Shown: positions 3,244 to 60,839 of the stretch, piece by piece
Numbering within the stretch: position 1 is the first letter of the stretch
Layout of the letters: every line of letters begins with the position of its first letter
DNA from: Pocillopora damicornis
Taxonomy: Eukaryota
Direction: 5' to 3'
DNA length: 64,000 nt
Assembly (NCBI RefSeq): GCF_003704095.1
Contig: NW_020844919.1
Location: forward strand, 1 to 64,000
Program-made: the position numbers and the translations under genes
Notes under the pieces: model-generated
The model's database searches: none
Told to the model about the DNA's origin: nothing
What the model saw: only the letters and a program-made list of their open reading frames with translations

Positions 3244-6200
3244 ATGGCTGCCATTTTGACTTGTCTTTTTAAATCCTTTCAATGGATTCCTGTACTCTTT
3301 ATCAACGCAGTGATTGTCTGGTCTTACTATGCTTACGTCTTGGTTCTTTGCTTTGGTGAGAGCTCAAAATTTTAGGGCTTAAAGGCGTTGAATTGTTGAT
3401 TTCGTGAGCATTATACAGTTAGTGCTCTTGTGCCGAGTTAGGAAACTAAAATTCTGCCTTCCGGTTAAATAACTTTCTTATGATCTTGTTCTCTTTGTTT
3501 CGATTTCAGAGAGTGTGCAGTCTCCATTCGAAAGAGGTAAACGAAACTCTGCTAGAGACGTTAATAAAAGTTTCGTGTGAGGAATACACGAATTACAATC
3601 TGATAAAATCAATACAACTTGCGTACTAATGTTTTTGTGAATTTCGTAATTTGATCGCTTCGAAATGTTGCCAAATTATGATTTCTCCTTCTTTTAAATT
3701 TCAGCTGCGTATTTGATCTTCTATCATCCTTTCTTCCTCATGTTGTTGATCTCATACTGGAGAACGATATGTACCTCTTCTGGTCTTGTTCCCTCGCAGG
3801 TTTGTTTAGTTTCAAATATTGGCTTAGTTGTCATCGATTTAGCAAATGGTGCTGTAATACTTTGCAAATCAGAGAATGTTCGCACTCTTAATTTGTAAAG
3901 AGTGCTGTGAAAACGAAAATAGTTTAGGATTACTTCTACCGCCGTAAGTGTGATCAGATGACCTGATCTTGAACTTGGGGATCTTAAACTATTATATATA
4001 TAGGAAACATTTGTAGAAGACAACTCACAGCTGTATTAATCACGGACTTCAAAACCCAGGTTGCTCCTAACTTAGAGCCAAAACTGTTCTAAATGTTGCT
4101 ATAGTTACATGTTACTAAGAATTCCCAGTTAAAGTACAAACTCGGTTGCAAAAAGCTGTTTCTTGAAAAATTCTGTACAACATTGCAAATTATAAAATTT
4201 GGAATGAATACACTTTTCATGAAATGGTTATCCTTTTTAAAAGGAGTTTTAAGACTACACCCCATATCATATATAATTAAATGTTAATCTTGTTTTCAAT
4301 TTGCAGTTTTTCCTGTCAAGAGCAGACAGGGAGGCATTAGATAATGGAGTATGTAATTTACTAATTGTTCTTATTAATTTTAAAGCTATCTAGACTAAAG
4401 ATGCTCCCTGGATGATGCCTTTTTGAAAGAAGTAAAAAGAAACCAAATTATTTAGATCTATGAGGATAAGAGTCATGTTTTGCCCTGTTTCAAAAGGCAC
4501 ATCACTCAACAGATCTAAGAATTACCAATGCAAGTTTTATAACATAGCTTCTTTAAATTAAAGAACCTGTGTAGTACTCAGCCACTGATAAAAGTTTGTC
4601 ACAAAATGGTATATTTATACACAAGGAAACTTTGTTGCAACACAGGTTTTGTAATTAGATGACAATGTGTCATGAATTTTGGGGCACAAGAAATTTTCAC
4701 CCTTAATGAATAAAACTGCTCAGGTCAGGAATTCTGCATCAATATTCTTGGAGGTTCACAATGTATTTGCTGATGTTTTTTGTTATCTTTTAACCTTCAA
4801 AATATAAATGATTGGAAATATATTTCCATCAATAAATTACCATCAAGCACAGTTTACTTTTAAAGTAAACTGTGCTTGATGGTAACAGATAGATCAGTAG
4901 AAATGCTTAGTAATAACTGGCCTAGTAACAAACTTACGTTATTTAAAAATTCTAGTGAATTTTTTTTGCAATAAGCATCATTAAGGATAATTAATTAACA
5001 CTGAATTCTGATTAGGGAGGCTACTCAGGAGTGACAGTGAGATTAAAACAGATGTTTTAAAAAGAAAAACTTTATTTTTTTGTGATGTGTTGTCTTTCCT
5101 TTTTAGTGCACAATGTACATTTATGAAAACTGTTTTCCTTTGAAATCTGTCTCTAGGATCCTAAAGAAGTCTTAGAAAAAATATCAAGAAAACTTCCAGT
5201 TTTTACACAGACCATATCAGGAGGTAAGATCTTGATTTTATTGGATTTTCTTGTGTCTTGTCACCTCAATATTATTGAGTTTTTTTAAAATAATTAATTG
5301 GAATTCTTTTGCAGCTGCTAGGTTTTGTGATGTTTGTCAAGCCATCAAACCTGACAGATGTCATCACTGCTCCATGTGTAGAAAGTAGGTTGAACAAGAG
5401 GAGACAAATTTCATTTTCAGTTGAACAAAATTTGATTTTGTTATTTAATTTGGTAGAAAATTATAGTGATGGAAATTAGGCATTTTGGAACACTGATTAA
5501 AACTATTTGGTTACAAAATTTTTAGAAGGGGTGAGGAGGAGTTTCACAAAGCCATACGCAATTGTTAATCTCTTAATTTGCAAGGCCAGATTGATCATTA
5601 CCTTTCCCTTTTAGTATCTTAACATTTCCATGTGAATTAAACCAAAAGGATTTGGTGTAACCTTATGATAACACCATTAACCCTTTCATTCTCAAGATCT
5701 TAATAGCAATTCTCCTTACTTTTGCAGTTTGGAAAGCCACAAAACACTAGAACAAAAATTTATCTTCCAAATCAGCACCCTTAATCCCCATGGAATCAAT
5801 GAGCGCTTTTCATTCTACTAATTTATTCCTGTGTTCTCGTCACCATATTCCCACCAATAGCCTAGCTCCACTTTCCGCATATAAACCCACACACAACCCA
5901 CAATTCCTCCAATTGCTCTGATGAAGGGCTNNNNNNNNNNNNNNNNNNNNNNNNNNNNNNNNNNNNNNNNNNNNNNNNNNNNNNNNNNNNNNNNNNNNNN
6001 NNNNNNNNNNNNNNNNNNNNNNNNNNNNNNCATATAAACCCACACACAACCCACAATTCCTCCAATTGCTCTGATGAAGGGCTAGTGCTCGAAACATCAG
6101 CTTTTTTTTTTACCCATAACAGTGGCCAATTTACATTTTCAACTCAGTTGTTAACACTAAATTACCTGTAATTTTCCTTACTGTCTACCATACGATTCTT

Positions 6201-11949: not shown

Positions 11950-13179
11950 TCACAAGGAATATGTCGGCCCAAATTTAATGCTCGATATCCCATGTACACC
12001 TCGGCTGCTTGCTGGCTGTGTCGAGCTATCTGCTCGATACAAAGATGGCTTCTGATTATGAGAGCAATTGTCTTGAGGTGGAAATCTTTCTTCACTGCGT
12101 TCAAATGACACGCCGACTTTGTTTCCGGCCAAAGTTCGTCGGGTGCTGTTCGCGGGTTCGTCCGTTGCAGTGTCTGCTTTGACATCGCTCGCGGTACCGT
12201 AAGATACCCACACCCTCAAAGGCGCTAAGATTCGCAGGTACTCCGCGCGGATGGAACGATTCATGATGCCATAGATGATGGGGTTCAGGGAGGTGCTAGC
12301 AAATCCAAAACAAGTGTAACTCACGTAAACTTGGCGTTTGAGTTTCCAGTCCGCGTTTATGAAGTCAATCATGTCGATAACCATCACAGGGGTCCAGCAA
12401 GTTAGAAAACCAATTACAACCACAAGGAGAATATAGGTAACCTTTACTTCGTCCACGGATAGAAGACTATCACTGCGATGGTTGAGCTGTCTTCGTTTTT
12501 GACTAAGTCGAAAGTTGAGGTTATGTTTTCGAACGGTGAAGAACACTTTGGTGTAACAAGTTATGATGATAATCAAAGGAATAAGCACATAAACGAGAAC
12601 CAAGTAAGCTCCATATCCCTGGTATAAGCTTTCAGCATTGTGCGCACAGAAAACTTTACCAGTGTGAAAGAAAAACTCGTGTCCGGAAACAACGTATGGA
12701 AGTGGCGCAAACAGAGCCAAGATCCACAAAATCGTGATTGTTACCTTTGTTGTCTTGATGTTAAAGTACTTTTGATACTGCGTGCGAGATCGAACAACAC
12801 GGAAGTATCTATTCACAGCAGTGACAGCTAAAGTTTGTAATGACACTGCACACATGAGAAGAATCCAGAAGCCTTGAAGCTGGCAGACAAAGTTGTTGAA
12901 AGGCCATTTTCCAACGATCAGAGAGGCGACTGAGAAAGGAATTCCCAGCAAAGACATCAAGAAGTCTGAGACAGCCAAAGTTATGATGTACATATTGGGA
13001 ACAGTCTTGCGAAGATTCGGGTTTTTGATGACAGCGATTCCAAGAAGAAGATTCCCAAAGAAAGAGAGGGAGTTGATAAACAACATGAAGAACGACTCTG
13101 TGGCCTGAATGACAGTCGATCGGCTTTTTAACTGCCAAGAAAAGACTTCAATTGTGGTCAGTGATGCGTTATCGCCCAT
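11950..13179 (-). CDS. Class A GPCR (melatonin-receptor-like, NRY motif), single coding exon, 409 aa from first ATG
   Basis: Seven hydrophobic segments with GN (TM1), LAVSD (TM2), C..QG...AVNRY (TM3), CWTP (TM6), NPIIYG (TM7). First in-frame ATG at 13179; the ORF track starts at TTG 13224. Probable 5'UTR intron ~13324-13669. Confidence 0.92.
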   Translation of the reverse strand: MGDNASLTTIEVFSWQLKSRSTVIQATESFFMLFINSLSFFGNLLLGIAVIKNPNLRKTVPNMYIITLAVSDFLMSLLGIPFSVASLIVGKWPFNNFVCQLQGFWILLMCAVSLQTLAVTAVNRYFRVVRSRTQYQKYFNIKTTKVTITILWILALFAPLPYVVSGHEFFFHTGKVFCAHNAESLYQGYGAYLVLVYVLIPLIIIITCYTKVFFTVRKHNLNFRLSQKRRQLNHRSDSLLSVDEVKVTYILLVVVIGFLTCWTPVMVIDMIDFINADWKLKRQVYVSYTCFGFASTSLNPIIYGIMNRSIRAEYLRILAPLRVWVSYGTASDVKADTATDEPANSTRRTLAGNKVGVSFERSEERFPPQDNCSHNQKPSLYRADSSTQPASSRGVHGISSIKFGPTYSL

Positions 13180-16100
13180 GGTTGTGGTCTGGTTGATCTC
13201 CGTGGTGTAATTGAAAGACTGCAAGACTCAGAGTCCCTGCCAAACGATCGTTTTGCTACCAAAGTTCATGATATGGTTAGGTGTCGCTGGATTTTTAACG
13301 CTTTCGTGATGTTTAGATGGGCCCTGATAAATAATTAAATAAAAAATGATAGTTTCGTCGCGGAAGTTTCACGAATATATCACCGAATTAATATGGATAG
13401 AGAGAACGAGCGAAAATTGAAAATTCGTGATAGTTTTGCTTTCGGATACGTACTTGTCATCAAATATCCTTTCTTGGGCGTTCACTTCTTTCGGATTTAC
13501 ACTCAAACTTTAACTGTTTGGAATGATTTTCATAATAGCTTAAACATCGTTTAGTTGTACAGGTTTTCCAGTCTTTTTACCGTTTTTCAGTTACAAAAGA
13601 GGAAAATTTTCCGAATTAAGCAGAGGCGGGCTGCAGGTGTCGTCAATGGAAGTGTGAAAGTAAACTCACCGTTTTTAAAAAGCTATGTTTCAGCTTTTGT
13701 CAACACAGCCGACAATGTTTGCTTGTAACTCAAACGAATCGTGGCTCTTAAATGTGAGCGAGCGGTATCAGATTCCTTCCGCGACTAATGCAATATATGT
13801 CTAGAAAAGGCTCAAATACATTTTGCAAAACATCATATCTACCAATTTGATAAGTCATCTTGGAAATATTCTGCTTGATAATTCGTGACCTATGTTAGTA
13901 AGTTTTGTCTCTGTTTGTTTTATTGGGGAAATGTTATTTACTTTTTGCAAAAACATTTCCTCACTTATAAAAATGAAAGTAATTCGACATTTATTTTTTC
14001 ACGTCTGTTCCAACACTGATTCCGATTGAGCAATTCATTAGCAAAACCGAAATGTAGAACTTTATGATTTCTCATAAAAGCCTCCCTAATTATCAGTTGG
14101 TTTTTTTTTTTGTAAAGTTGTCATCAAGTTTTCTTTCAACGCGGAGATGAAGGTGGAAAAATAACACGACAAACAGTCATGCTTTTCAAAGGTACTTTCT
14201 GAACAATACCTTTCCGTCAACTGTGCCAAGATTGCAGGAAACACTCGAAATGTTCCTTTAAAATTCATACTGGTTAATTTTGAAAGCACTTAGTTTATCA
14301 TGCAAGATGTCAAAGTTGTCGGAGACTTACATTGATCACTTTGAAGAACAGGGAGGACAAATCTTGATTAATAAAACATTTCAAATGATAACCGCAAGAA
14401 TTGTGTTCACTGAGCCAAACGGGACTCAGTTTTTGCATTGTCAGATGAGTCAAATGTTGAAATTCTTTCTAGAACACTCGGCCAAAACAAACATTCCGTA
14501 TTCGGCGGGGTTGAATCACCCACAAATTTCAATGAACGTGCATTTAACTTGAACGGCTTTGTGTGATTCCACAAGTTCTAATTATCTTGCATCCTTTCCT
14601 ACAGACAGTAATTGTCGTTTTTTTAATAAAAGAAACCTGAATATATAACGCTTTCATTTATCAGTATTAGACAGGTTGCTAATTAACTACAACACGCCGG
14701 TCTTTCATTTACCCAGAAGCACGTTGCGGTAAATAATGAAAAGGTTATTCGTTTTTCTAAGCCCTGTGACCGACTAATTTCTTTCCTGGATTATTCCGCA
14801 ATTGATTCGACCAACAATCCGCAATCCAACCTGCAAACTACTCACGCGCCGGTCGGAAATGTTTTTGCCTTCCTTCTCACAGCGGGAAATTGCAGCGTAC
14901 GTAGGGAAATTGAAATGGCGCCATTTTGGCTTTGAATTGTGTGTAGTTTACCGCTCCACTTTTTTTATGTTTTACAAAAGTCACTTTTAATAATTATAAA
15001 ATTGCTTGTATTTATGCCAGCGTATTTCGTTTCTTCGCGTTCTTCAAACAGGTTTGTTTTTTGGTAATGGTTAACAATGTGAATGAATGATCAGCACGGT
15101 GAGCCTATCGCTAGTCCATTCCTAATTCAAGTGTATCGCTTTAAAAAGAACTCGAAAGAGAACCGCAACACGCATCTTGTATCCGCTCGTGTTTCGTGTT
15201 TGGGGCATGGCTCTCTTGGTTTCATCTAAAGAAGTTATTTGGTCTTATGAGGGGCCAAAACGACAGGCTTCTGCGGAGCCGGTTAGATCATGATGAGTTA
15301 TATTATTTATCTTTTGGTCATCCCATCCCCTTGCCTAAGGGGTGCCAGCTTTGAATGCATTCCGCTCTGACAACTTCTTTATTTTTGTTTTGGAGGCTGC
15401 GCAGGATGATTAGCAACGTGTTCTCAATAAGATTTTTCTTAAGAGAATCGAATTATTTTCCGTGATCACTTTCGATTGAGAAATCTCCCTTACCTCACGT
15501 GCTGTAACTCCAGAAACCAAATGGGAAATTATAGTATATATTAGTATATATTAGTATAGTCGCGTACCGCTTTTACTTTTCTTCTTTGTTTCGTTTCGAT
15601 GCTAAGAAAAGCCAAAATTCATCGCAACACTATTTGGATTGATTCTTTTAAGTAAACAAGTTAATTTCTTTCCCTGAAAAAAAAAATTTAATTCGGTGAC
15701 TAAGGGAAATTCTGATTCAATGTGAACGACACATTTTCGGAGCTAATTGGGATTATTCCAGAGGACGGTAGATCTTGGCAATATTACAAACTGGCATGGT
15801 GCCGAATAACACTGTCACATTCTTAAAACCTGGAGTCTAAAATATTAATTGCGCAAAGTCATCACTAGATCTCGCCGGAAATATCCAAATCGTAGACGTG
15901 TCGTGAAAAAGCGTAATTTTCAATGTGACGATTATATTTACGTCTGTATGCCAAGTTCCTGTTTAGTTTTTGTGGTTAAGCAAAACAGTTATATATCCCG
16001 CTTGCGAAAGGCGATGACATTTTCAACATTTATGTCATTGTATCAATTTGTTTGCCTAATCTTCTTCAAATATTGTTTTCTTTATTAGTGTCTGGTCGTT

Positions 16101-17335: not shown

Positions 17336-18316
17336 ATGAATGCAACACTGAACGCAATTGAAATATTCGCCCGCCAGTTACAAGACCGTTCTCCTACAAG
17401 TCAAGCCACAGAGTCGTTGTTCATGTTGTTGATCAACTTTGTTTCCTTTGCTGGAAATCTTCTGCTCGGAATCGCTGTCATCAGAAACCCAAATCTTCGC
17501 AGCACTGTTCCCAACATGTACATCATAACTCTGGCTGTCTCAGACTTCCTGATGTCTTTGCTGGGAATTCCGTTCTCAGTCGCTTCTCTAATCGTTGGAA
17601 AATGGCCGCTCAGCAACTTTTTCTGTCAGCTTCAAGGTTTCTGGATTCTTCTTATGTGTGCCGTTTCGTTAGAAACTTTAGCTGTCACTGCCGTCAACAG
17701 ATATGTTCGTGTCACCCGATCCCGCGCGCTATATCAAAAACTCTTCAGCCTAAAGAAAACGAAGATAACAATCGCGATTTTGTGGATCCTGGCATTGTTT
17801 GCGCCCCTTCCATACATCGTTTCTGGTCACGAGTTTTTCTTTCACGCTGGTAAAGTTTTCTGCGCGCACGATTTAGAAAGTTTGAATCAAGGATATGGGG
17901 CTTATTTGGTTCTTGTTTACGTGGCTATTCCACTAATGATCATCGTTATTTGTTACACAAAAGTATTTATAGCGGTGCGCAAACATAACCTTCAACGCAG
18001 GCAACGAAGGAGGCAAATGGACCTGCGATCCGACAGTGGGCTATCTGTCGAAGAAGTGAACATTACAAACATTCTCCTTGTGGTTGTAATAGGTTTTCTA
18101 GGCTGCTGGACTCCCGTATTGGTGATTGATATAATCGATTTTATAAACGCGGATTGGAAACTAAAACGGCAAGTGTATGTGAGTTACACTTGTTTTGGAT
18201 TTTCCAGCTCTTCGTTAAACCCCATCATATACGGTATCATGAATCGTTCAATTCGAGCGGAGTACTTCAGAATTTTTAAAACCTTGAAGAATTTTGTTTT
18301 TAGACAAAAGAAGTAA
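17336..18316 (+). CDS. Class A GPCR (melatonin-receptor-like, NRY motif), 326 aa, paralogue of the minus-strand receptor
   Basis: Same 7TM motifs; long stretches identical in amino acids to 11950-13179, e.g. TVPNMYIITLAVSDFLMSLLGIPFSVASLIVGKWP and IDFINADWKLKRQVYVSYTCFGF. Confidence 0.94.
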   Translation: MNATLNAIEIFARQLQDRSPTSQATESLFMLLINFVSFAGNLLLGIAVIRNPNLRSTVPNMYIITLAVSDFLMSLLGIPFSVASLIVGKWPLSNFFCQLQGFWILLMCAVSLETLAVTAVNRYVRVTRSRALYQKLFSLKKTKITIAILWILALFAPLPYIVSGHEFFFHAGKVFCAHDLESLNQGYGAYLVLVYVAIPLMIIVICYTKVFIAVRKHNLQRRQRRRQMDLRSDSGLSVEEVNITNILLVVVIGFLGCWTPVLVIDIIDFINADWKLKRQVYVSYTCFGFSSSSLNPIIYGIMNRSIRAEYFRIFKTLKNFVFRQKK

Positions 18317-44841: not shown

Positions 44842-47800
44842 TCAGCTAATAGTTTGAGGCAAGCTGGCAGTCTGAGTCACCACTCTATACTCATAAAAGT
44901 GCAAAAATGTCTGCCCTATGTTCCAGCCCACAGCAAGAGATACAATGTACCCCATCACTACCAACAAGACAGGATATAGTAGCACTACAGTACTTCGAAG
45001 AAATGGTAATGCTGTGGATATTTATGAAAAAAAAAAATCAAAGAGAAGTTAATAATCAAATACTCATGCAATGCAAGCAATTAAATTATTTTGAATGTTC
45101 ATGAAATTTTCATGGCTCATCGATTGAAAGGGTTGGCAGTCATTTTCACAGTTAATAACTTTTGAAGCTCATCAATTTTACATTTATGAGGCTCAAGTAA
45201 ATGCTCCTCTGAACAAAAAACTTTGTGAAAGTATATTTAAGTTTAGTGTTAAATGGGAAAGACATTGCTAACAGAGGCAGGAGGTTGTTATATCACAGCA
45301 ATGAAAACATCAACAGGTTTAAAAGACATCATCACTCCAAAACAAAGTAATCTGACCAAAATACATTACAAGTAAAAGAACTTATGTCAGTAATAATTTT
45401 CCTTTAAAGGTAACTCAAAGTGATATCCCCAACAAGGACAAAATATCAGTGAGCAACAGAGCAGCATTGCAACTGCAAGCTACATCACTGATAGTCAGAA
45501 TTATAAGGAGAAATCATACTACTTATACATATCTGAAGAAGTAAAAACTCACCGCTGTATCCTAGGAAAGAAATATAAATATAATACACCAAAGCTATGA
45601 GCCAAAGAGAGTTTCCAATAAACCTTGATATGAACCAAGGATTGTCTATGATGACTAAAAGAGACAAGGAGAGAGTTAAGGTTATTTATTAGACCAACTA
45701 TGAAAAGCTACCATGGTGCTGTCCTCACCCTTATTTGTCCTTTTAANNNNNNNNNNNNNNNNNNNNNNNNNNNNNNNNNNNNNNNNNNNNNNNNNNNNNN
45801 NNNNNNNNNNNNNNNNNNNNNNNNNNNNNNNNNNNNNNNNNNNNNNNNNNNNNNNNNNNNNNNNNNNNNNNNNNNNNACAGACCTTTTGCCTAGCTTTGC
45901 AAAAGGGAAATGCATAATACAAGTCATTCATATTCTAGTACTTCTCAAAGTAACACTCCTGGGATATTGCCACATCCATGTACTACTCCAATACTACAAG
46001 ACTAACTGAAGATAATTTGCATAGCCTTTGATGAAAGGGGCAGAGTGATTCCCTAAAACTAGCATTAAACTAAATGTACATGAATTGCCAAACAGCTTCC
46101 TAGAAAATTCATCTAACATATCTAAACATCACATGCTTTTGAAAACAAATGCAAAACATCAGAAAACCATCACCACACGAAATATTTATAAATATAATTA
46201 TGTTGTGCTTTGATATCAACTCTGGTTCAAGTATTGATAACCTTTGTTCAAAACTCATCAATGAATGTTAGTATTAAAACTACTCCTCAAACAAGGAATA
46301 AGAAATGCAATATACACTTCAAGTTACTATACACAATTAAAGTGATCATCCATTTCAGCTACTAACAACTGGTTAACAGAAAAAGCATATTTACTCTTCA
46401 TACAAAAGAGTTGGATGACATGTAATATTAACAGCAAAGGGAAGAAAGCATTTAGGTGAACATCAAATGCATAGGCCCATTCTACTCTTTGTCCTGGATC
46501 ATGTGCAGTGGATATCCTCAGGTATCTGTTGCAAAAGAACCTATAGAGGTAAAAGAACCATTATCAGATACAGTAGCTTACTTAACAAAGCATCAAATAA
46601 TATTTTTTCCATCAAACAAGCTCAGAAGAAGATACAACAAGCAATCAAAGACAAGCAGATTCATTTTTAGTGAGTGACTTTCACTCGCATTTAAATATGA
46701 GACGAGAATTCAAGCAGAATGTTTGCCAAATGGCTACCAAAGGAGAGGATGTGGTCAAAATAATAAGCAAACTCAATAGCCTTGTGGTACTAACTTACCA
46801 TAATAATGATGCGATAATGAGACCCACAGCAATGCAATCCACAAATACAACCCATAATAAAAACTTTAAAAATCCTAAAAAGGGTAGCTTCAACATAACA
46901 GCAAAGCCAATAGAAGATGCTGAGGATGTAAAAGGAAACAAGGACTAGTTGAGTGCTGAAGGAAAACAAAACACTGCAACCAAATTCACCAGTCAATTAT
47001 TTTGAGTGCAAAATTACTTATGAACAAAAGCTACATCAGATTGACAGAATTAACTTGTCAATGTCAATAAGCTTTCATACCATTTTCTGAAGAACACTTA
47101 AAAGTAATCTAAACTGAAGACAATTTGACTTATGTCAAGTTATCAAATTATTCTTCGGTCTTAACCAGTCACATTCAGTTCTCTCAAAACCATTCCACTA
47201 TAACCTCAAACTCAGGGTGACTCTGATTTTATTTTGTTCCCTGCTTGTTAGATTTTTCTTACGCTAACCATTTACTTCCAGTCATATAGAAATAGAACTT
47301 CTAAGAGCACATGATCCTGTTCAGGGACTTGTCACCAACCCCATTTTAAATCTAATTCCCTATTAAACAGATGTTCAACATCTCCTTTCCTGTGACAAAT
47401 ACTGGTACAAAAGGGTAACTAATACATGAAACAAGTGTCTGCAGTGCTGGTTACTTACCACACAACCAAATACTAAGCAACACAAGAAAAGCAGGATCAT
47501 CCCTTGCCCACTGGTCTTTTGTTTCTGTATGAGACAGGAAAGTCAACTATATGTTCCAGTAATAATCACAAAACGAGCTTCTGATAGAAGTTTCTTTTAA
47601 AAAAACAAGGCAGTGCTTATACATGCCAAAAAATATAATTCTAACATACCTCTAGAAAATGTTCTTTACTGAAAAAATACACTAAAAATATACAGATTTT
47701 CAGTAACAGCAGTACACCTTGAGGTGAGCCATTTTGACAAGTAAGTGTCTTCTGAATTGTCATTTGATAAAATAAAGGATGCAGAATAAATTGCCATACA

Positions 47801-49424: not shown

Positions 49425-51105
49425 TGCAATAAAATATCTATATTCTATTTGTAATAACCAAACAGTCTGTCATTAAAAGAGATTTTTGATTTATACGCCA
49501 AATTATCTTGTACCTTAGCAGTAAGACTGCACAACAAGTTTGTTTTCGGTTAATATTCTGCGCATGCGTTGACACGTCAAAGTTTTCCATGATTCTTTGC
49601 AGGGAAATTTCCCTCGTGACATGTCACGCAAAATCACAAACACGTCACGCAGAAAGGATACTGGGCAAAAGCACTGTTTCCCCAATCTCAAATCGAAACG
49701 AAAACAATCAGAAGAATGTATCATCAGCCTTTCTCAATTCTTAGGCAAATCAGTAATATTTGGGAAGTTATCATCACGTATAATTGGTTATTCACCATCC
49801 AATAAAATTGTCACGTTACATATCATTACTTAATATTTGTACTCCATGGAGTCTTCTTAATCTTTATATCATGTGCTTAGCTGATTAGAATCGGAATGAC
49901 TGTAAGCGAACTTGCGTACTGAAATTGGACGAAATGAAGGGTTGATGAATGGATATATGTGCGAGTTAAACACTTGTCACCCTTAGTTTGGTGACCATTT
50001 CAGAGGTACATTTGATGAGGAATCGGAGTAATCAAGGAGTAAACTTATTGGAAAGCATCAAATATGATCCGCACTTACTTAATTGGCTTTTTTGTCATTA
50101 TCAAACCGAAACTGTAGCTGTCATATTACATTCGATAAAGGCTCATACTATTTTAAACGCCCATTTTATTGAATTAAATGTTCTTAAAATCATATATTAA
50201 TACAGCTGCATGGTAACTTTCACTAAAAATTGTACTTATGTTACGGTACAGGAGCCCATGGGTCCTGACTATATCAATTCTGAAACGACAGAAAAATAAA
50301 ATTACCCCAATATCTCTATAAAGCTTCTCTAAACGGCCGGTCTTTGCCGACAACAACTAACTCTGCTGGTGGGCTTATTCATCTTCACGTAACGTTTATA
50401 TATAAGGCATTTTAGAAAATACAAAATAACTATCATGGTTGCATTACATCAATTTTTGCATCGCTTAGTACTTTAAAAAAGACTGAAAATCTCTTACAAA
50501 CCACGAAATCATTGTAAATATGCAGAAATTAATTAATAAAGAGGAATGATTTTGAGAAAGCTGCTGATCTTGGAAAATCCTTTTTTTAAAGAGAGTTTTT
50601 CAAGCATTAAGTGCACCTGTTTTTCGTATGGGAAAGGTAATTTATTTCACGCCTGACAAACGGTCAGGGTGAAAGTTCTTCCGCCTTGTTCCGTTCACGT
50701 TTTACGTGTGGACATGCTACGTTGACGTTAGCGTCTCAAGTCTGCCATGAGTGAGTCTCGCTGGTAAGCTTACGTAGACTTTTGAGATAACTAGATACAT
50801 GAGCCTAGAAACGTTTGTATACTATACAACAATCAGCTAGCTAACTACTCCCCATATCAAAATTTCATGATCTTTAAACGGTACTTTTCGGGTTGAAAAA
50901 TAGATGTAATAATGACAAATGGTTACCGCCACAGTCAGAAATAAAGAGGACACACGGTAAGACCGCAGTTCAGTACATTTTACAATTTAANNNNNNNNNN
51001 NNNNNNNNNNNNNNNNNNNNNNNNNNNNNNNNNNNNNNNNNNNNNNNNNNNNNNNNNNNNNNNNNNNNNNNNNNNNNNNNNNNNNNNNNNTTCTAGGCCA
51101 TTTAC

Positions 51106-52058
51106 CTGTAGTATACAAAAACTGCCGTAGTGCTGAACATTCCAACGAAAGGAGTTAACCATAAGAAAAATCCAGAAATAAGGAGGAGAATGTAAAAAAG
51201 TTGCTCCTCATACACGATACCCAGAACACTTGTCTCATACACTCGCCACTTCACAACGAATGCATAAAAGTACACCATAAGTACTAGGGATACTTCGCCT
51301 CTTAGTGGTGGAAATCCCAGCCAAAAGAAGATGCTAAGGAAGATTATCAGCGCATTCAACCAGTTGGGTAACATCCCAGTAGACTGTTGTATTAACCAGG
51401 GGAAGAAAGTCAAAGCAAGCAGTAACCCGGATAAAATCTTGAAGTAACGGGCAATCGAGCGACGTTTCGTGGGAACGATGGTCTTGATTAAGTAGGACAC
51501 GAGGAATGCGAGGAATAGGCAAGAGAACAAGTAAAACTGCTCGCGCACCTCTGGATGACCGATCTCAAATTGTTGAGTGCAATGTCTCACTGAAGTGTTC
51601 TGTCCTTTTGAAGTTTGAGGGACATCACTGCAATTGAAGCCTTTGCGCATGACCGCGCCAAGCACGTAATCGATGACGTAGGCAGATGGAATAGCGCCAG
51701 CGCTATAGATGATGCAGGGTATGAGGAGATTGACTGTGATCACCAGAAAAACCAGTATGATGCTCTCTAAAATGCCTTGTAATGGATTTTTCCAGTTGCA
51801 TAAGTAACCAGCTCTGCTTCGTATGTGCTCAAAAAAAATTTTATGCCAATCCGGATCATCCGTTCTTTCGTGTCTGTATTTCCAGTCCAAGTAGGCAGCG
51901 GCTGTGTAATTTCCTCCTGAGACGCAGCTCACGTAACCAAATTTAACTTCACGATGTAGAAGCCTTCGCAACACACCTGAGCTCAATGCAGCAGAGCGAA
52001 TTCCACCACCAGAGAAAGCAACGCCAATCTCTTCCTCTGGAATGTGTATCTGTGCCAT
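51106..52058 (-). CDS. Membrane patatin/cPLA2-like lipase, paralogue 1, first coding exon only (interrupted by assembly gap)
   Basis: GVAFSGGGIRSA glycine-rich loop, YVSCVSGG nucleophile Ser, then several hydrophobic segments; AG|GTAAAT donor at 51106/51105, the same position as in paralogue 2; gap begins 15 bp into the intron. Confidence 0.85.
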
Positions 52059-52493
52059 CTCTATCTCTGGTTATTTCTGATGCTGTAATAATTCCCTGGA
52101 AATTCTTGAAAATGAAAAGAACAATTCCAATTACAATCCCGTAGTACTCCTCACTATAGTAGAAATTGCACATTTCCGCCTGAACTGCAGGTAAATAGAT
52201 AACCATTCCTATTATTTCTGTTTTCTCATAACTGGAGCGGGTAAAACAAATTTAAAAATGCTCATTGATAGATATGTAAAGAGATCAATAATAGTATGGA
52301 AGCTGAAGGCTTGCTGGTTTAATTATAAGAGAGTTCCAGCGTCTATACCCGAGTTTCCCAGTACTTATCAACAGTCGTGTTACATGTCACGTGTCTTGCT
52401 ACTTATTGACAGTTGTGTTACATGTCACGTATCCCCCTAATGAGGTCTCATTTGCAAACAGGAAATTGCCATAATTTTTGGGAAACCGCCTTC

Positions 52494-52524
52494 AGTCAGC
52501 GTTTATTCGGAATAAACGCTGACT
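52494..52524. repeat. Perfect 15-bp inverted repeat with 1-nt spacer
   Basis: AGTCAGCGTTTATTC-G-GAATAAACGCTGACT. Confidence 0.85.
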
Positions 52525-52543
52525 AAACTCAAATCAATGATAA

Positions 52544-55155
52544 AGCTGGTTGTGCTTTTCCCTTCGCATGAAAGTGGAGATAGCAAATTACAATGTAAGA
52601 AAGGAAATTTTCTGATTGGACACCCGAGCGAGGAAAAAGAAACCAGAAAGTTTTCCAGAAGTTTTATGACTTTTACAGTAATTTAGGTTCAACATAGTAG
52701 CACTTCGTACGAGGCAGTCAACACAATGTAAACTAAAACGAATTTTGTCAAAACATTTTGCGAAATTCGAGCGTGGTTTTCATGCCATGCAATGAATCCT
52801 TTACGAAACAAGTTTGTTCAGTGAAGATGGATATTCGTGTTACCTCACTTCAAATGTAATACATCCGGTGGAGAACTTATAAAACATTCAATTTGGGCAA
52901 TCTTGACTTTACGCATCGTCAATAAGGCAGGTTCATCGAGTAAATAACATCCCAAATCGATTTTTTTGTCATATACAGTTCATTAAACCTCTTTTAAGCG
53001 ATCACGAAAAATCAAGACAGTTCCAAGATACTTACAAAGTATTAACCGACCTTTTAAGTGCGGTCACTTTCAAACGATAGCTTAGCCTGATATGAAGACC
53101 ATGTCTTTATGAAGATTGTACGTCCATAACAAAATATTTTCGAAAAATGCATATATCCTCAAACAGCAGACGCAAACTTTACTTACCTCTCCGCTTAAAG
53201 TAGCAAACAAACAATTCCTAACTCCACTGAACTATACCTTTTTCAAATATCTCAGTTTTAAATGAGCTCACAGTGGGCGGGGGTTTACCCCCACAAAACA
53301 CTTTCATTTTCAGAAAGGAAGTCCCTCTTTAATGTTCGCATATGTCTTCCGGGAGAATTATCAGTGAAGCTGTGCTAATCGCGTAATAGGTTTATATGTT
53401 TGGCGGTCTTTTGGTCGCTAAAAGAAAACAGCTGCAGTGATTCGAGTGCAGGAGCATCTACCATTTCTCCCAAATCACACACACAAAATCGTCTACCACT
53501 GCTTCTCTAGCCACAACTTTTTCATTCATGTTTCGAGAAATTACTTATTATTATCAACTCTTTCCCTGACCGCTTTCACTTTCGAGGTATTGATTATTCA
53601 AAATCACGTCAATGGCAGGTATTCTTAAGAAACGAATTGAGGCGAGCCATGTTTAAATCACTTACTTTCAAACATAAAACGCAAATTGATAGGTATTCGA
53701 TGACGAATTACAAACTGATATCTCAAGACACCTGTACACAGTAAGCTTATTTACACTTATTTGTGTAAAACGAGTTGATAAACACAGATTAATAAATGAA
53801 TCAATGTTAATTAAAGTGTCAGACAAATAGATTACATGAATTATAATAAGATTATTGACACATTTCGGCTCTACTCGAAATGTATGGAACATTAAGGTTA
53901 TACATAATGTTGCAGCTGGTTGCGCTTTTCCCTTCGCATGAAACTGGAGAAAGCAAATTACAATGAAAGAAAGAAAATGTTCTAATCAGACACCCGAGGG
54001 AGGAAAAAGAGACCAGAAAGTTTTCCAGATGTTTTATGACTTTTACAGCAATTGAGGTTCAACATAGCAGCACTTCGTACGAGGCAGTCAACACAATGTA
54101 AACTAAAAAGAATTTTACTAAAACATTTTCGAAATTCGTGCGTGGTTTTCGTACCATGCGATAAATCCTCCATTAAACAAGTTTGTTCAGTAAAAATGGA
54201 TATTCGTGTTACCTCACTTCAAATATAATACATCCGCTCGAGAACTTATCAAACATTCAAGTTATCAAGCATCGTCAAAAAGGCAGGTTCATCGAGTAAA
54301 TGATATCCCAAATCGATTTTTTTTGTCATATAAAGTTCATTAAACCTCTTTTAGGCGATCACGAAAAATCAAGAGAATTTTAGATTCGTTAAGATACTTT
54401 CAAAGTATTAACCAAGTTTTTATGTACAGTTACTTTCAAACGATAGCTTAGCCTGATAAGATGGCCATGTCTTTATGAAGATTGTACGTCCATAACAAAA
54501 CATTTTCTAAAAATGTAAAAATCCTCAAACAGCAGATGCAAACTTCACTTACCTCTCTGATTAACGTAGCAAATGAACACTCTTAACTCTTCTGAACGCT
54601 TAATGAATCTATCGTTAGATTTCACAGTGAGCGGGGGGTTTCCCCCACAAAACACTTCCGCCCCTCTTTACGTAATCCGTCAAACTGTGCTAATCGAGTA
54701 ATAAGCCTGTGTGTTTAGCGCTCTTTTTATTAATTAATTGAAGATTATTCAAAATCATAACAGTGGCAGGTAGCCATGTTTAACCAATGCTGTCACTGCT
54801 TTTCTAGCCACAACTCTTTCATTTATGTAACGAGAAATTACTCAATATCATCAGTTCTAGATCTTTCCCTGACTGCTTTCACTTTCGAGGTATGACGTGT
54901 CATTCAATTAAATGATGATTATTTATATCATAACAATGACAGGTAACCATGTTTAACCACTTACTTTTAAACATGAAACGCAAATTAATAGGTATTTATT
55001 TTACACTTATTTGAGTAACAATAGTTGATAAACACAGATTAATAACCGAATCAATGCGAGTCAAAATATTGGACAAATAGATAACATAGGATATAATAAG
55101 ATTATTGACACACTACACTCTTCTCGAAATGTATGGAACAATCAGGTTATACATA
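52544..55155. repeat. ~1.3-kb tandem segmental duplication (52544-53906 and 53914-55155) covering the promoter and 5'UTR exon of lipase paralogue 1
   Basis: Both units start AGCTGGTTG.GCTTTTCCCTTCGCATGAAA and end CTCGAAATGTATGGAACA...AGGTTATACATA; each has an ACTTACCTCT minus-strand donor (~53181, ~54547). Confidence 0.9.
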
Positions 55156-55585
55156 GTTTAAAATGGCGAAGAGTCACCGTCTGATTTTTCATTTAAAATC
55201 GCGGATTTTTGTGAGGTTTCTCAGTTCTACTGACATTTCATTTCGTAGTTTTGCTCTCAATCTGGCGAAAGAGTTGATCGAGTTGAATCGACGATCGGGA
55301 ATCTTTGGTACAAACGTTGTTTGATGATATGCCAAGTACGCATACTATAGGAACAATCAATAGTGTATTGTCGTGACGGACATCATGCATGAAGAAACAC
55401 AAGCATGCGGTTTTGTCCTCATTATCGTAAGCTTAAGATTCCTTCTAAGAAAATTTTAGAGGAAATACACACCACAAAATTGCAAGCGTTCTTGGATCAA
55501 GTGGCGAAGAAGAGCTTCTTTCTGTTACCAAAGAAGATTGTCAAGGTATAAGTACGAGCTCGTCCTCGTGTTGTTAAACCATAAG

Positions 55586-55792
55586 TTATGCCCCGTTCAA
55601 ACTGTCATAGTGGTTAATGATAGTTTCAACTATCACGCGTATTTGAACACGAACTATCATGCTCTATCATCGACTACTTTCAACTATCATGCAGTTTGGA
55701 CATTTTCAAATTCGACATGATAGTCCGGTTGACGATAGTTTTTGCCGTTTGCACGAGCAGATGATAGTGAATGATAGTTTTTCGGGCAGCAG
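55586..55792. mobile_element. Probable PIF/Harbinger-type transposon end
   Basis: TTATGCCCCGTTCAAAC followed by repeated AACTATCAT motifs and their inverses ATGATAGTT; no second terminus identified. Confidence 0.45.
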
Positions 55793-56980
55793 TTTTGCCA
55801 AAACTGGGCTCAAACCGAGATGGCAAAGGATAAAATGAATTAAGTAGCCGTAAAAATTCCTCAGAATGTCTTGAAGTTCATTCTAATCATCTCCTGGTAG
55901 GCTTCAGTATCTTCAACTCGCAATTTCTTGACAATTAGGTGCTGCAAGGGGTCTGCACTTATTGATGACCGAATATTTTGGTAACATGTGACATTATCTT
56001 AAGATGTCTTTTCTTTAACTCGCAGTTAATCCCTACGATCACATGACTATTTTCCGCCAAGTCAGAAAAGCAATTCTAGCTTCTAAGATCTCCAGCGCGG
56101 AGACTGAAGACTTTTACGGAATGTTTAAATCTATATGTACTCCAGAGAACGTCCTTTTAAAGGTCTGATTTGAAAGTCGGGTAGGATTCAAAGGACTGTA
56201 AAAGATGTAGGTTCATCTACAATCAAGCTGGGAAGCGGTCATTAGTGATCGTCTTGCAAGGGAGGGGGGGCGGGGCGGGAAGCGAAGGATTTTGGTTCTG
56301 TCACAATAAAATTTACCTGATCCCTTCTAAGGCGCTGTAGCATTCTAATAAACTCCCTTTCAATTTCTTTATTCAATTTTTTTTGGTGAAAATGTCACTT
56401 TCAATTAACAAAAAAAGACTAGAGAGAAATCCTGGAATTGGTCGGACATAGTACTATTTGGCATATGGCGTGACAGCTTTTTACTCAGCTTCGCATTTTA
56501 CACTAGGACAGAACACGCTCTTTCAACCGATGACAGAGCACGTTATATCCGAACTTTATTATAAACCATAATAAACGGCTGAATGATGCCTCTTACAGTC
56601 ATTTTTTTTTCTCGCTAAAATAAACTAGCATTACATATATCATACAAAAATTTTGAGGTTTTGAAACTTTGTAAATTATAGGGAATTCTGTAATCTCAAT
56701 GAAGATTCAATGGAATCCTTTATTCTCAAAGACCCTCATTCATTCACCCTCCCGACCCAATCTTTCATGGTCATTAAACGGTAATTTTTTCTAAGCAATC
56801 TTGCAATAATAAAACATTTCTTTTGTTTTCCCACCAATAAACCCTCGTTTATAGAAATTTTCTCTTTAAATTAAATTTCTTAAAATTTCTGCCAATTTCT
56901 ATTCAGAGGGTACAATAAAAGAACATGCGCAGTCCCTTACTATTTTCATTCTCCGTAGTGGGACGGTACGTTCTTCTTCA

Positions 56981-59900
56981 TTACACAATATCTGCGAGTT
57001 CAGTGGCATCACACTCCTTAAGAAATTCCTCGGCACCAGATTCTACGCATGCACGATACCCCTCGCGGTGATAAGCTGTATAGAGTGAAGACGTAAAGAA
57101 TTGATTGACAGTTGACGTACTTGGGAATCCCAAACAAAGCTTTTTAGATATCCACTGAAGGACTTTGGAGTTTGAGTGACAACATTCACAGCAGCAGAAC
57201 GTCAAGCGGTCAACTTCATCTTCGCTGAGAACAGGCCCTTTACCCCACTCTTTTTCGTCAAGTCGCTCTCCGGTATCTTGGTGGTACTGATCCCAATTAT
57301 TTTCCAAATCTAGAGATGGTTTTCCATACTTGGGGTAACGAGGTGCGATGATCATTATGTCGCCTTCACTCACTTTCTCGTAGCTTTCATCGGGTTTTTT
57401 GTCGTAATACTGCACCTTAAATCTATGATATCTTGGCTGGCGACCTCGAGGTACGTCAACGTACGTTTTACGCATCTCCTCCTTCACATCACGGCCACCA
57501 AATCCCACAAACTCACAATTCAGGACCTTTCTGGCTTGATCCATCGATTTCAGGATCTGTTTGGCGTAGTCTTCATCGTTCACTATAAAACTTCCATCCA
57601 CGATTAAAATCCGCTTAAGTCTTTTCTTCAGTAGTGGTAGCAAACCAAATTTCTCCAGGCGACCACCATCACTGAGAGATAGCAGTGCTGGGGGCCTGGG
57701 GCCGACATTGTTCACTTGAAATAACTCACGCAACATTCGAACATGATATAAATGTACGTGACACCATCTGTAGGAAACAAAAGATCAGGGTCACTAAAAG
57801 TAATAAAAGCTGTGAAGTGCGCCAAAAGGTTTGATCGAAGATAAAGTTTTCAGAAAATACGTTTGTTTAAGAAGACAAAAACTATCGCGGCATTTTCGGA
57901 GCGCAATTAATGACAAAAAATAACCTAATGACAGGCTTTTCGAAAAATTAACCATCGTTAGAGCAATTTAAAATCAAATGTTGTAAGTAATCCAGGATTA
58001 AGAAGTTTTTTTTTTCATTGTGTGCTATGATTGTTATAATAAACTCAAAGCTCTTTCCCGCACAATCAGATGTAAAACGTAAATCAGACTGTTGCGTTTC
58101 CTTTGTTCAGCTCTGATTGTCAGTCGTAATTATCTTAGACTTGTTTTTATATGACATTCCGGCAATTGACAAGCGCTCAACTGAAGCATAGATTTTCCAT
58201 TCTGTACGGACACACACTGATAAGGTAGAACTCTCAAATTTCTCACCTTGCAAAGTTGTCGAGGAAGCATGGTGTTCTACGGCCAGTTTGCAACAAGGCA
58301 ATTCCGAAAAAAATTATAAAATAGACCACGAACGAAGCGATAGCGGCTCTCTCAGCATTCTTCATGTCCCAAGGAGAATGCCAGATGGCTGCAAGCAATA
58401 TTATCGGGAGGGCTGCGATGCTCTGGATTAAAATCGCTAAAATCTGAAACAAAAACGCCAGACAACACAATGAGACAACGGAATAAAAACGATCGGAAAT
58501 AGAAAGTTGTCGATGGTCAGTGGAGAGCTTATTTTGTTATCACCACGAGTCGTCCGTTTAACCACCCGCCGCCGGCCACCCACCACCTGCCAACCGCCGC
58601 CTACCGCCTGCTGCTAGCTGCTTACCGCCTGTTGCCCGCTGCCTGCCGTCTACTACCTGCCGCCTACTGCCCACCGCCCGTCGCCTACCGCCTGCCGCCT
58701 GCAGCCTGTCGCCTGTCCGCCTGCCGCAATTGCATTCGCCTCTCATATCGTTTTATCGTTTTCCTAAAGTTAGGTTTCACATTGCAACCCACCTTTGAAG
58801 CTAATTCTCCTCCACATCCGAAAGACTCATTCGGATTACTCCTGATTCCTTTTCGGAGGGTTAATCCCAAAAGCATCTGTAGATCTCTGAACGGCTCCTC
58901 CTGCTCCGGACTCAGTGCCATCACAGCAGCAGAGGTTACCATGGCATCCGTCTGATTGACGTATTTTGGATACAATTTGTCCTCCACACTAGGTTCCCCC
59001 GGCTGATGGTCGATTCGTTCATTCTCAGTCGGTGACAGTGCCATGATGGCGTAGGAAGGCTCTTTTAGGATCGGTTTCTTGCGCCAATAATCCACTGCCA
59101 CGTTACTGATGTATTGCGGTTTGACTTGCTTTAGGTCATCCATAACTAGAGGTTCTTTGGCTGGGTCGTGCTCCTCGGGGCTATAGCAGGACAGTATCGG
59201 GAAGAAGTCTCGGCAACTGATTCCGTTACAGCCAAGTAAACCAACGCTTTTCTTCGTAAAAAATGCTCGCTGCAGTCTCCACCTGAAATTGAAAAGAACT
59301 TCGCTCTATTACCCCATTCACGCAAAATATTTTTAGTTGAACCGGGTTTAACTAAATGAAAAGGACCAATATCAGTATCTGGGCAACTGCCCACCTACCC
59401 CTCCCCTAACCCAACATTAACCCTAAGTTGTTATCAATAGACTGTTGTTGGGTTAGGGGAGGGGTAGGTGGGCAGTTGCCCAAATTAGAAACAGAGAACT
59501 AAAAACTGAGTTTCCATAGGATTCAAGTAATCGCTAACTTTTGTTTTCAGTGAGCTACATTTAAAGTCGACAAACATCGGTTTAAGCAGCTTCTGTGAAG
59601 TAACAAATTTATAGAACTGTGTTTAACAAAAAAAGTTTAAAACACATTTAAGGTTTAGTGTGAATGAGGTATAAGATTGAAAGAGGCTTTTTGAAATCAT
59701 TCGAGTGTGCGCAGTAACTCTGCCTCCATTGAACTATGTTCCTCTCCTTGTCTGTATATCGCAGCCAAATAAATGGTTAGAAGCGTGATAACGTTAAAAT
59801 GAGGATTGTTCGATCCTTGGCATAAACCTACTTGATCTCCGTTCGTAGATGACAACACAACAGCTACCTCTTGAATTGATTGAGAAGTTAGCACTACTTA

Positions 59901-60839
59901 CTTGTAGTATGTAAAAATTGCCGTGGAGCTGAACATTCCAACGAAAGGATTCAACCATAAGCAAAATCCAGAAACGAGGAGAAGATTGTAAAAAAGTTTC
60001 TCCTCATACTCGATACCTATAACACTGGTCTCATACACTCGCCATCTCACAACGGATGCATAAACGTACGCCACTAGTGCTAAGGATGCCTTGCCTCGTA
60101 AGGGTGGAAATCCAAGCCAGAAAAAGATGCTCAGCACGATTACTAGCGTATAAAGCCAATCGGGAAGAACCTCAGTAAACTGCTCCATCAACCAGGGAAT
60201 GTACGTTAAAGCAAGCAGCGACCCGGACAAAATCTTGAAGTAACGGGAAATCGAGCGAAGTCTTAATGGAGCGATAGTCTTGATGACGTGGGACACAAAG
60301 AATGCAAGGAAAAGAAAAAAGAACAGGTAAACTGGCTTGCGCATCTCTGGCTCGTCGATTTCGAATTGTTGAGTGCAACGTTTCCTTGAATTGTTCAGTC
60401 CTTTTGAAATTTGTGGGACATCGGTGCAGTTAAAGCCTTTGCGCATGACCGTGCCAAGCAGGTAATCGATGACGTAGGCAGATGGAACAGCACCGGCGCT
60501 GTAGATGATGCAGGGGATTAGAAGATTGACTGTGATCAGCAGGAAAACCAGTATGATGCTCTCTAAAATGCCTTGCAATGGATTTTTCCAATTGCAAATG
60601 TAACCAACTCTGCTTCGCATGTGTTCAAAAAAATTTTTATGCCATTTCGGATCATCCTCTTTGTTGTTTCTGTATTTCCAATCCACGTAGGCGGCGGCTG
60701 TGTAATTTCCTCCGGAAACGCAGCTAACGTAATCAATTTTAACTTTACGATGCAGAAGCCTTCGTAACACACCGGAGCTCAATGCAGCAGAGCGAATTCC
60801 ACCACCGGAGAAAGCAAGGCCGGTCTTTTCCTCTGGCAT
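56981..60839 (-). CDS. Membrane patatin/cPLA2-like lipase, paralogue 2, complete, 4 coding exons, 803 aa
   Basis: Exons 60839-59902, 59282-58793, 58443-58247, 57767-56981 (2412 nt, phases compatible). Motifs: GLAFSGGGIRSA, DYVSCVSGG, TM block, YYKWRLQRAFF, PQYISN, DAMVTSAA, two further TM segments, LSLSDGGRLEKFGLLPLLKKRLKRILIVDG (catalytic Asp), FPSTSTVNQFF...YTAYHREG. Non-coding upstream exon donor ~61883. Confidence 0.88.
58561..58728. repeat. Degenerate GC-rich heptamer minisatellite (CCGCCTR)n in an intron
   Basis: Repeated CCGCCTG/CCGCCTA-like units; these explain the low-complexity ORFs here. Confidence 0.8.
59362..59482. mobile_element. Palindromic MITE in lipase intron
   Basis: Perfect 37-bp inverted arms: TGGGCAACTGCCCACCTACCCCTCCCCTAACCCAACA (59380-59416) and its reverse complement (59446-59482). 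Confidence 0.8.

Follow-up and report, generated by a model that had tools for sequence, protein, structure and literature searches.

A predicted polytopic membrane enzyme of the cPLA2/patatin fold encoded by an expressed, multi-copy gene of the coral Pocillopora damicornis

Relation to described lipases

Lipid signalling depends centrally on the cPLA2 and PNPLA enzymes, which are regarded as soluble proteins in need of delivery to membranes. Recruitment of cPLA2 to the membrane is driven by Ca2+ through its C2 domain, and acyl chains are moved from one membrane lipid to another by cPLA2 epsilon and some PNPLA enzymes. The animal PNPLAs described so far are soluble or at most N-terminally anchored, and none is known to have helices inside the catalytic domain. 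Here we analyze a four-exon gene and the first exon of a close paralogue in a 64,000-nucleotide stretch of the Pocillopora damicornis genome (assembly GCF_003704095.1, contig NW_020844919.1, positions 1 to 64,000; hereafter, the window), for which an earlier reading of the letters alone (the original prediction) had proposed a tandem family of multi-pass membrane lipases. Judged by structural models, the gene encodes a polytopic membrane protein that is at the same time a cPLA2/patatin enzyme, and it belongs to a widespread, unstudied family. We consider it probable that the locus specifies an expressed integral-membrane acyl hydrolase of this fold, from an old family that has expanded in the coral.

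With group IV cPLA2 (PF01735; structures 1cjy and 5izr), the coral protein shares the SGGGxR loop with its phosphate-binding Arg, a Ser about 30 residues further on, an Asp in a D-G-G/A motif far downstream, and a large insertion between the Ser and the Asp (Z 22–23, with 329–374 residues aligned). The two differ in that the coral protein has no C2 domain, in the nature of the insertion, which consists of membrane helices (6 + 2) in the coral protein but of a soluble cap and lid in cPLA2, and in the nucleophile motif, which reads C-V-S-G-G in the former and G-L-S-G-S in the latter. Patatin and the PNPLA enzymes (PF01734) likewise possess the Ser-Asp dyad, the glycine-rich loop and the alpha/beta fold. 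The dyad within a patatin fold is also found in CapV/CapE and in ExoU/VipD, which, unlike the coral protein, are soluble, are activated by cyclic nucleotides or host cofactors, and reside in defence or virulence loci. The order of both motifs and helices is shared with bacterial “patatin-like phospholipase family proteins” of 700–1400 amino acids (aa), exemplified by those of Methylocapsa sp. S129, Bradyrhizobium (labelled “cell division protein”), Gallionella, and Acidobacteriota; these differ from the coral protein in forming a separate clade, in their greater length, and in lacking the Cys cluster and introns, and they are equally unstudied.

Structure and expression of the gene

Four open reading frames (ORFs) on the minus strand, at 59898-60839, 58685-59143, 58243-58470 and 56981-57736, constitute one gene. 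Alignment of five full-length anthozoan proteins by tblastn shifted the start of exon 2 to 59282, upstream of the first ATG of its ORF. Searches were run with the separate exons or with natural full-length homologues as queries, whereas the exons were concatenated computationally for length, stop count, motif positions, and hydropathy. The exons sum to 2412 nt, equal to 803 codons plus the stop, with no internal stops, and all introns are of the GT..AG type. The gene and its parts are as follows:

60839..56981, minus strand: complete gene, 4 exons, 803 codons; five anthozoan proteins align in order by tblastn
59902..60839, minus strand: exon 1, from the start ATG, encoding aa 1-312 and 2 nt of codon 313 (ORF; RNA joint at 59900/2)
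60794-60792, minus strand: Arg16 of the SGGGIRSA oxyanion/phosphate loop (aa 11-18), in exon 1
60716-60714, minus strand: Ser42 of the CVSGG nucleophile motif (VSGG at aa 41), in exon 1
60581-59904, minus strand: first membrane block, about six predicted helices, aa ~87-312, in exon 1 (hydropathy and AlphaFold2)
59283..59901, minus strand: intron 1, phase 2, directly before the WRLQ motif; skipped by RNA contigs
58793..59282, minus strand: exon 2, aa 313-476, middle soluble catalytic segment (tblastn; record 25 of RNA run X2 is a contig spanning exactly 58793-59282), with the WRLQRAF helix, the YISNVAV strand and the AMVTSAAVMA block, the counterpart of patatin block III
58444..58792, minus strand: intron 2, phase 0 (joint 58443>58793 in RNA run X2)
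58247..58443, minus strand: exon 3, aa 477-541 plus 2 nt, second membrane insertion, a predicted two-helix hairpin (aa ~477-495 and 509-527; hydropathy, RNA joints on both sides)
57768..58246, minus strand: intron 3, phase 2, 11 residues upstream of the LRELF motif (joint 57767>58247)
56981..57767, minus strand: exon 4, aa 542-803 plus the stop (ORF; tblastn), carrying LSLSDGGRLEKFGLLPLLKKR with the catalytic Asp575 (57670-57668; SDGG at aa 574-577), the C-terminal sheet and the FPSTSTVNQFF motif
57196-57176, minus strand: Cys cluster CCCECCH (aa 733), in exon 4

The gene is transcribed and spliced exactly as modelled, because RNA contigs from three libraries, representing three RNA runs of three studies, carry all the exon joints, namely 57767>58247, 58443>58793, and 59280/2>59900/2. 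The first of these joints is present in three RNA runs. In contrast to the RNA contigs, a DNA-like run is contiguous over the intron sequences. The 3′ untranslated region extends at least to 56700 in the RNA contigs. The complete 803-aa spliced gene with three coding introns foreseen in the original prediction is hence confirmed by the RNA joints and the open frame, and the SGGGIRSA loop, the VSGG Ser, the SDGG Asp, and the CCCECCH cluster near the C-terminus all lie where they had been placed.

Two of the introns harbor repeats. Intron 1 holds a palindromic element resembling a miniature inverted-repeat transposable element (~290 bp, 59292-59579), the arms of which are mutually complementary, one with “gggcaactgcccacctacccctcccctaaccc”; word depth in the DNA run is ~29,700 within this repeat and ~10 in its flanks, and some RNA contigs show a variant of it with a 119-nt internal deletion (59384>59504), which is not a GT-AG intron. 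Intron 2 contains a G+C-rich simple repeat of ggcgg/caggcgg units at ~58560-58740, where the local GC content rises to 0.44, and which yields two spurious ORFs (58558-58746 on the minus strand and 58632-58955 on the plus strand).

A cPLA2-like catalytic domain interrupted by membrane helices

The Pfam Patatin model (PF01734) matches aa 8-62 of window exon 1 with 27.4 bits (cut-off 27.7) and the paralogue with 19.8 bits, and the homologues from Acropora (P0153) and Stylophora (P0166) score 27.7 and 18.4, respectively, with only the first third of the model being matched. NCBIfam gave no match for any exon, a sequence search of the PDB with exon 1 gave none, and matches in the ESM Atlas were confined to generic clusters of bacterial patatins. 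No C2 domain was matched with Pfam, and the catalytic strand begins at residue 7. One bacterial relative scores 29.2 bits on PLA2_B (PF01735; cut-off 23).

The fold was assessed on the natural full-length Stylophora homologue P0166, modelled with AlphaFold2 from a 40-sequence alignment (predicted local distance difference test [pLDDT] score, 82.1; predicted template modelling score [pTM], 0.82). Foldseek ranked human cPLA2 alpha and delta first, and VIA-align returned Z scores of 22.9 for cPLA2 delta (5izr; 329 residues aligned) and 22.0 for cPLA2 alpha (1cjy; 361 residues aligned), followed by PlpD (18.6), CapE/CapV (15–16.5), patatin (15), iPLA2 beta (14.2), VipD (13), and ExoU (11; range for VipD/ExoU, 10–13). 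With the cPLA2 scores 3–4 units over the next family, the catalytic-domain fold is nearest to cPLA2, which supports the patatin/cPLA2-type lipase fold of the original prediction. Because every alignment covers residues 1 to ~800 of the P0166 model, the three soluble segments (aa 1-85, 313-476, and 542-803) are shown, at the level of the model, to assemble into one cPLA2-like catalytic domain. A model had been suggested to see whether the Ser and the Asp meet: the whole-span match to the cPLA2 fold was obtained, and the alignment suggests the closeness of the two residues.

The residues expected to carry out catalysis are strictly conserved. G12, G13, G14, R16, and Ser42 are invariant across 40 full-length and 42 first-exon sequences, as is the catalytic Asp (D581 of the alignment, corresponding to Asp575) in all 40 full-length sequences. 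The nucleophile elbow, C-V-S-G-G, has Cys or Ser rather than Gly in its first position. At the level of the fold, the protein displays the features of the patatin-like superfamily, namely the G-G-G-x-[RK] loop, the Ser elbow, the Asp in D-G-[GA], and the alpha/beta fold.

Between the catalytic Ser and Asp, hydropathy and AlphaFold2 place eight helices in two blocks, about six at aa ~87-312 and two at aa ~477-527, bearing out the large insert of transmembrane (TM) helices noticed in the letters. Exon 1 of the window gene was itself modelled with AlphaFold2 (42-sequence alignment, pLDDT 84), yielding helices at 87-114, 164-189, 192-220, 227-243, 245-268, and 280-312, and, in the loop between TM1 and TM2, a beta-hairpin (136-143, 150-157) with two nearly invariant Cys residues; in the window gene, this hairpin also bears the N-glycosylation sequons NCT and NNS. 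The helices of exon 3 match helices 480-499 and 511-532 of the Stylophora model. Comparison of the exon 1 model, including the six-helix block, with 48,161 PDB representatives recovered helical hairpins only (best Z 7.5); as modelled, the block resembles no solved membrane fold recognised in that search. The protein has no predicted signal peptide and begins straight at the catalytic strand. Because of this, together with the even number of helices in each insertion and far-side loops devoid of Lys and Arg, we infer that the catalytic domain is cytosolic and the TM1–TM2 beta-hairpin lumenal or external.

Relatives in bacteria, protists, and early-branching animals

Full-length proteins of ~800 aa, labelled “uncharacterized” or “PNPLA domain-containing” (the latter being already the UniProt label of the anthozoan proteins), are encoded by Acropora, Montipora, Oculina, Stylophora, Pocillopora, Porites, Desmophyllum, Exaiptasia, Nematostella, and the octocoral Dendronephthya. 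When 1.84 billion representatives were searched with a profile, 13,845 proteins reached E ≤ 0.001, of which 284 also reached E ≤ 1e-30. The named non-cnidarian top matches belong to the calcareous sponge Sycon ciliatum, Planoprotostelium, Protostelium, two Paulinella species, Cyanophora, Gefionella, and an MMETSP transcript. A named, broadly distributed metazoan orthologue group with the same architecture would have spoken against the original prediction; no named bilaterian group turned up.

In species-representative bacterial genomes, relatives of 700–1400 aa occupy more than 500 loci, in Acidobacteriota, Pseudomonadota, Bacteroidota, Planctomycetota, Verrucomicrobiota, NC10, and other phyla. 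Alignment of the anthozoan profile with two bacterial proteins using hhalign gave probabilities of 99.6–99.7 and superimposed the SGGGIRSA, VSGG, R..L..AF, SAAA block, SDGGH.ENLG..LL.RR, and FP..ST..QFF motifs, and bacterial proteins scored 160–211 bits against a profile of non-cnidarian eukaryotes, with 450–640 of 824 columns aligned. The bacterial motif series listed in the original prediction is therefore truly shared.

Several protist members, including P0342 (Planoprotostelium), P0371 (Paulinella), and P0346 (L094:10001-13915), are much longer and fused to lipid-related modules, either a class-3 lipase plus a fibronectin-III domain or C1 domains; such fusions would fit a role in lipid metabolism or signalling. 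P0346 is an intronless ORF of 1304 aa, and the same contig bears a piggyBac-type transposase and a reverse transcriptase.

Evolutionary origin

For phylogenetic analysis, sequences were aligned to family hidden Markov models, and branch support was expressed with the Shimodaira–Hasegawa-like approximate likelihood ratio test (SH-aLRT). In the main tree (513 columns, 94 sequences), the bacteria formed one clade (support 100), as did Cnidaria (97) and Sycon (99), and the last two were united (92) in a group that sits among protist and unnamed eukaryote-like sequences. The animal group of Cnidaria and Sycon was also obtained in a 42-row tree (support 95). An early tree of 174 columns had placed Sycon weakly beside the bacteria (support 67, on a long branch), and the 513-column tree moved it to Cnidaria. 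An unnamed sister sequence, P0284, is from Sycon too, because the assembly that contains it also contains the Sycon gene.

Evidence that does not depend on the trees comes from the introns, each of which has a counterpart in Sycon. Intron 1 of the coral gene (phase 2, within the codon preceding WRLQ) has its equivalent in both of the Sycon genes examined, intron 2 (phase 0, immediately ahead of the seventh helix) coincides with an intron of P0284, and intron 3 (11 residues before [LIF]RE[LFV]L, phase 2) coincides in both Sycon genes. Moreover, the CC.CC cluster is confined to the eukaryotic side, being present in 0 of 38 bacterial rows and in 1 of the 42 top metagenome matches, which is the MMETSP transcript. 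Because of the trees, the three introns shared with Sycon, and the eukaryote-only Cys cluster, the data suggest that sponges and cnidarians inherited a gene with introns from their common ancestor, and not that cnidarians imported it.

Paralogues in the coral genome

The window contains one further copy of the gene, represented by its first exon and truncated at an assembly gap:

52058..51106, minus strand: first exon of the paralogue, from the ATG at 52058 to the donor AG|GTAAAT at 51106 (ORF, Pfam, tblastn)
50991..51090: assembly gap of 100 N, interrupting the first intron of the paralogue, with the donor 15 nt before the gap

The paralogous exon carries the same motifs as exon 1 of the complete gene and is 76% identical to it at the protein level (synonymous divergence, dS, 0.39; ratio of nonsynonymous to synonymous divergence, dN/dS, 0.33), and the dN/dS value between the two indicates constraint, not diversifying selection. 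Exons 2-4 of the paralogue were found neither in the window nor, at comparable identity, elsewhere in the assembly, so that of the close paralogue originally described only the first exon stands, the remainder being unassembled.

Across the assembly searched (234.35 Mb, 4393 contigs), first-exon homologues occur at ~13 places on 9 contigs, with tandem copies on contigs C2150 (three), C535 (two), and C1129 (two, one with stop codons) in addition to the window, and last-exon homologues match in keeping with the first-exon copies, several being split by an extra intron. The tandem arrangement proposed for this locus is clearer on other contigs than in the window. The 234-Mbp P. damicornis assembly has been called probably under-assembled (PMC9646523).

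In the paralogues on C2150, C535, C3498, C580, and C1379, the last-exon region matches in two pieces (query aa 2-108 and 104-246), and these copies therefore appear to have an additional intron, which is missing from the window gene and from the copies on C2698 and C1129. One of the two C1129 copies (G000:C1129:739872-740817), a first exon with several in-frame stops, is probably a pseudogene and adjoins an intact copy at 735033-735962.

Proposed function and alternative explanations

If catalysis follows the cPLA2 scheme, Arg16 would contact the phosphate of the lipid, and Ser42 and Asp575 would carry out the hydrolysis or transfer of an acyl ester. The helices, which occupy the position of the cPLA2 cap in the models, may keep the active site at the cytosolic leaflet at all times with no need of a C2 domain, and they probably form the route taken by a membrane glycerophospholipid to Ser42. 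On this view, the enzyme would be a constitutively membrane-bound phospholipase A or lysophospholipase, possibly a transacylase, and the eukaryote-only Cys cluster would most likely be a palmitoylation or metal site. A more far-reaching proposal, which we put forward only tentatively and regard as somewhat doubtful, is that these proteins represent an undescribed integral-membrane class of cPLA2-type enzymes, in which the eight helices replace the cap as an in-membrane substrate gate, that the class has persisted in bacteria, protists, sponges, and anthozoans but disappeared from bilaterians, and that its expansion in the coral serves to remodel a specialised membrane, for example the symbiosome.

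Several observations weigh against an old family of integral-membrane acyl hydrolases. Pfam Patatin covers only the first ~55–70 residues with a score about at the cut-off, and the 23-bit cut-off of PLA2_B is not reached by either window copy (no match for the complete gene and 9.1 bits for the paralogue). The modelled Stylophora protein is only 45–50% identical to the window exons, the proximity of Ser42 and Asp575 derives from the full-span alignment to cPLA2, and the topology draws on hydropathy, the missing signal peptide, and a weak charge bias. The trees come from quick searches and have SH-aLRT values as their sole measure of support, and an approximately unbiased (AU) test on 42 rows did not reject a position of Cnidaria next to the bacterial clade (p 0.155). 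The absence of bilaterian, medusozoan, ctenophore, and placozoan matches holds among the named matches only, many matches being unnamed transcripts. Finally, the literature searched contained neither enzymatic data for any family member nor papers on the family under this architecture, in surveys of cnidarian PNPLAs, or by gene identifiers.

The alternatives to an old, expressed membrane hydrolase bear on whether the gene is real, where it came from, and what it does. That the ORFs are an annotation artefact or a dead gene, arising by chance or as a decayed relic, could draw on the stop codons in the C1129:739872-740817 copy and on the incompleteness of the window paralogue; the complete gene itself, however, gives rise to spliced mRNA in three independent RNA studies, its 803-codon frame is open, its catalytic residues are invariant, and dN/dS is 0.33, so that the dead-gene explanation, to which we assign practically no probability, is already refuted for it. 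Very improbable in our judgment is a transfer of a bacterial TM-patatin gene into the cnidarian or anthozoan lineage, followed by the gain of introns and expansion. Such an event would agree with the abundance of the architecture and motif series in bacteria, the patchy distribution in animals, and the outcome of the AU test, but the sampled bacteria form a single clade (SH-aLRT 100) with no cnidarian sequence within it, Cnidaria group with the sponge Sycon (92–95) among protist sequences, the three coral introns match those of the two Sycon genes in residue and phase, and the Cys cluster is common only to other eukaryotes. Of the two origins left open by the original prediction, horizontal acquisition and an ancient family lost from model animals, the trees and the Sycon introns disfavor the former and favor the latter, as an old animal gene passed on by vertical descent.

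As to activity, the Ser-Asp dyad might shift acyl chains rather than hydrolyse them, making the protein an acyltransferase or transacylase of lipid remodelling. This rather unlikely alternative is consistent with established cPLA2 and PNPLA enzymology and with the fusion of protist members to lipase and C1 domains, and an active site held in or at the bilayer by membrane helices would be expected to prefer lipid acceptors to water, although the sequence offers no distinction of transfer from hydrolysis. Improbable, too, is an immune or suicide effector comparable to ExoU or to CapV/CapE of the cyclic oligonucleotide-based antiphage signalling system (CBASS), which would remain inactive until signalled and then destroy the membranes of its own cell or of an invader, the expansion reflecting an arms race. 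The fold class is shared with CapV/CapE, the family is multi-copy with tandem duplicates and one decayed copy, and the two first exons of the window have diverged (dS 0.39). Yet PADLOC models match neither the coral nor the bacterial proteins, no sensor or nucleotide-binding domain was seen in the coral protein, and the dN/dS value reflects constraint instead of diversifying selection. The flanks of five bacterial loci are mutually unrelated and include a PIN-domain gene, a flavohaemoglobin-like gene, cytochrome c, LysR, a GH3 glycosidase, and a PGAP1-like lipase; PIN domains are common in toxin-antitoxin systems, and no conserved or defence-type neighbourhood, including a CD-NTase or other cyclase or a sensor, was found at these five loci. 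The CapV-like immune hypothesis of the original prediction thus gained nothing from either the PADLOC models or the bacterial neighbourhoods, and an immune or symbiosis role has no support yet.

Should an integral-membrane hydrolase of the cPLA2/patatin fold prove correct, threading a catalytic domain through the bilayer would be a further means of linking a Ser-Asp lipase with its substrate, and bacterial and protist proteins that now lack names would gain a function by the thousands. In coral biology, it would amount to a lineage-expanded, expressed lipid enzyme family that is invisible to homology annotation because it is absent from the usual model animals. The coral family is a reasonable candidate to look for in symbiosis, bleaching, and single-cell data sets, although a link to these is absent here. 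With its introns in common with a sponge, the family would also be a clear case of a gene that early animals had and bilaterians lost, and not one of horizontal transfer.

Other features of the window

The window further contains two assembly gaps, at 5931-6030 (100 N) and 45747-45877 (131 N), and two intronless ORFs for rhodopsin-family G protein–coupled receptors, located on opposite strands ~4 kb apart, one at 11950-13224 on the minus strand (424 aa) and the other at 17336-18316 on the plus strand (326 aa), which match Pfam 7tm_1 with E values of 7e-44 and 8e-48, respectively.

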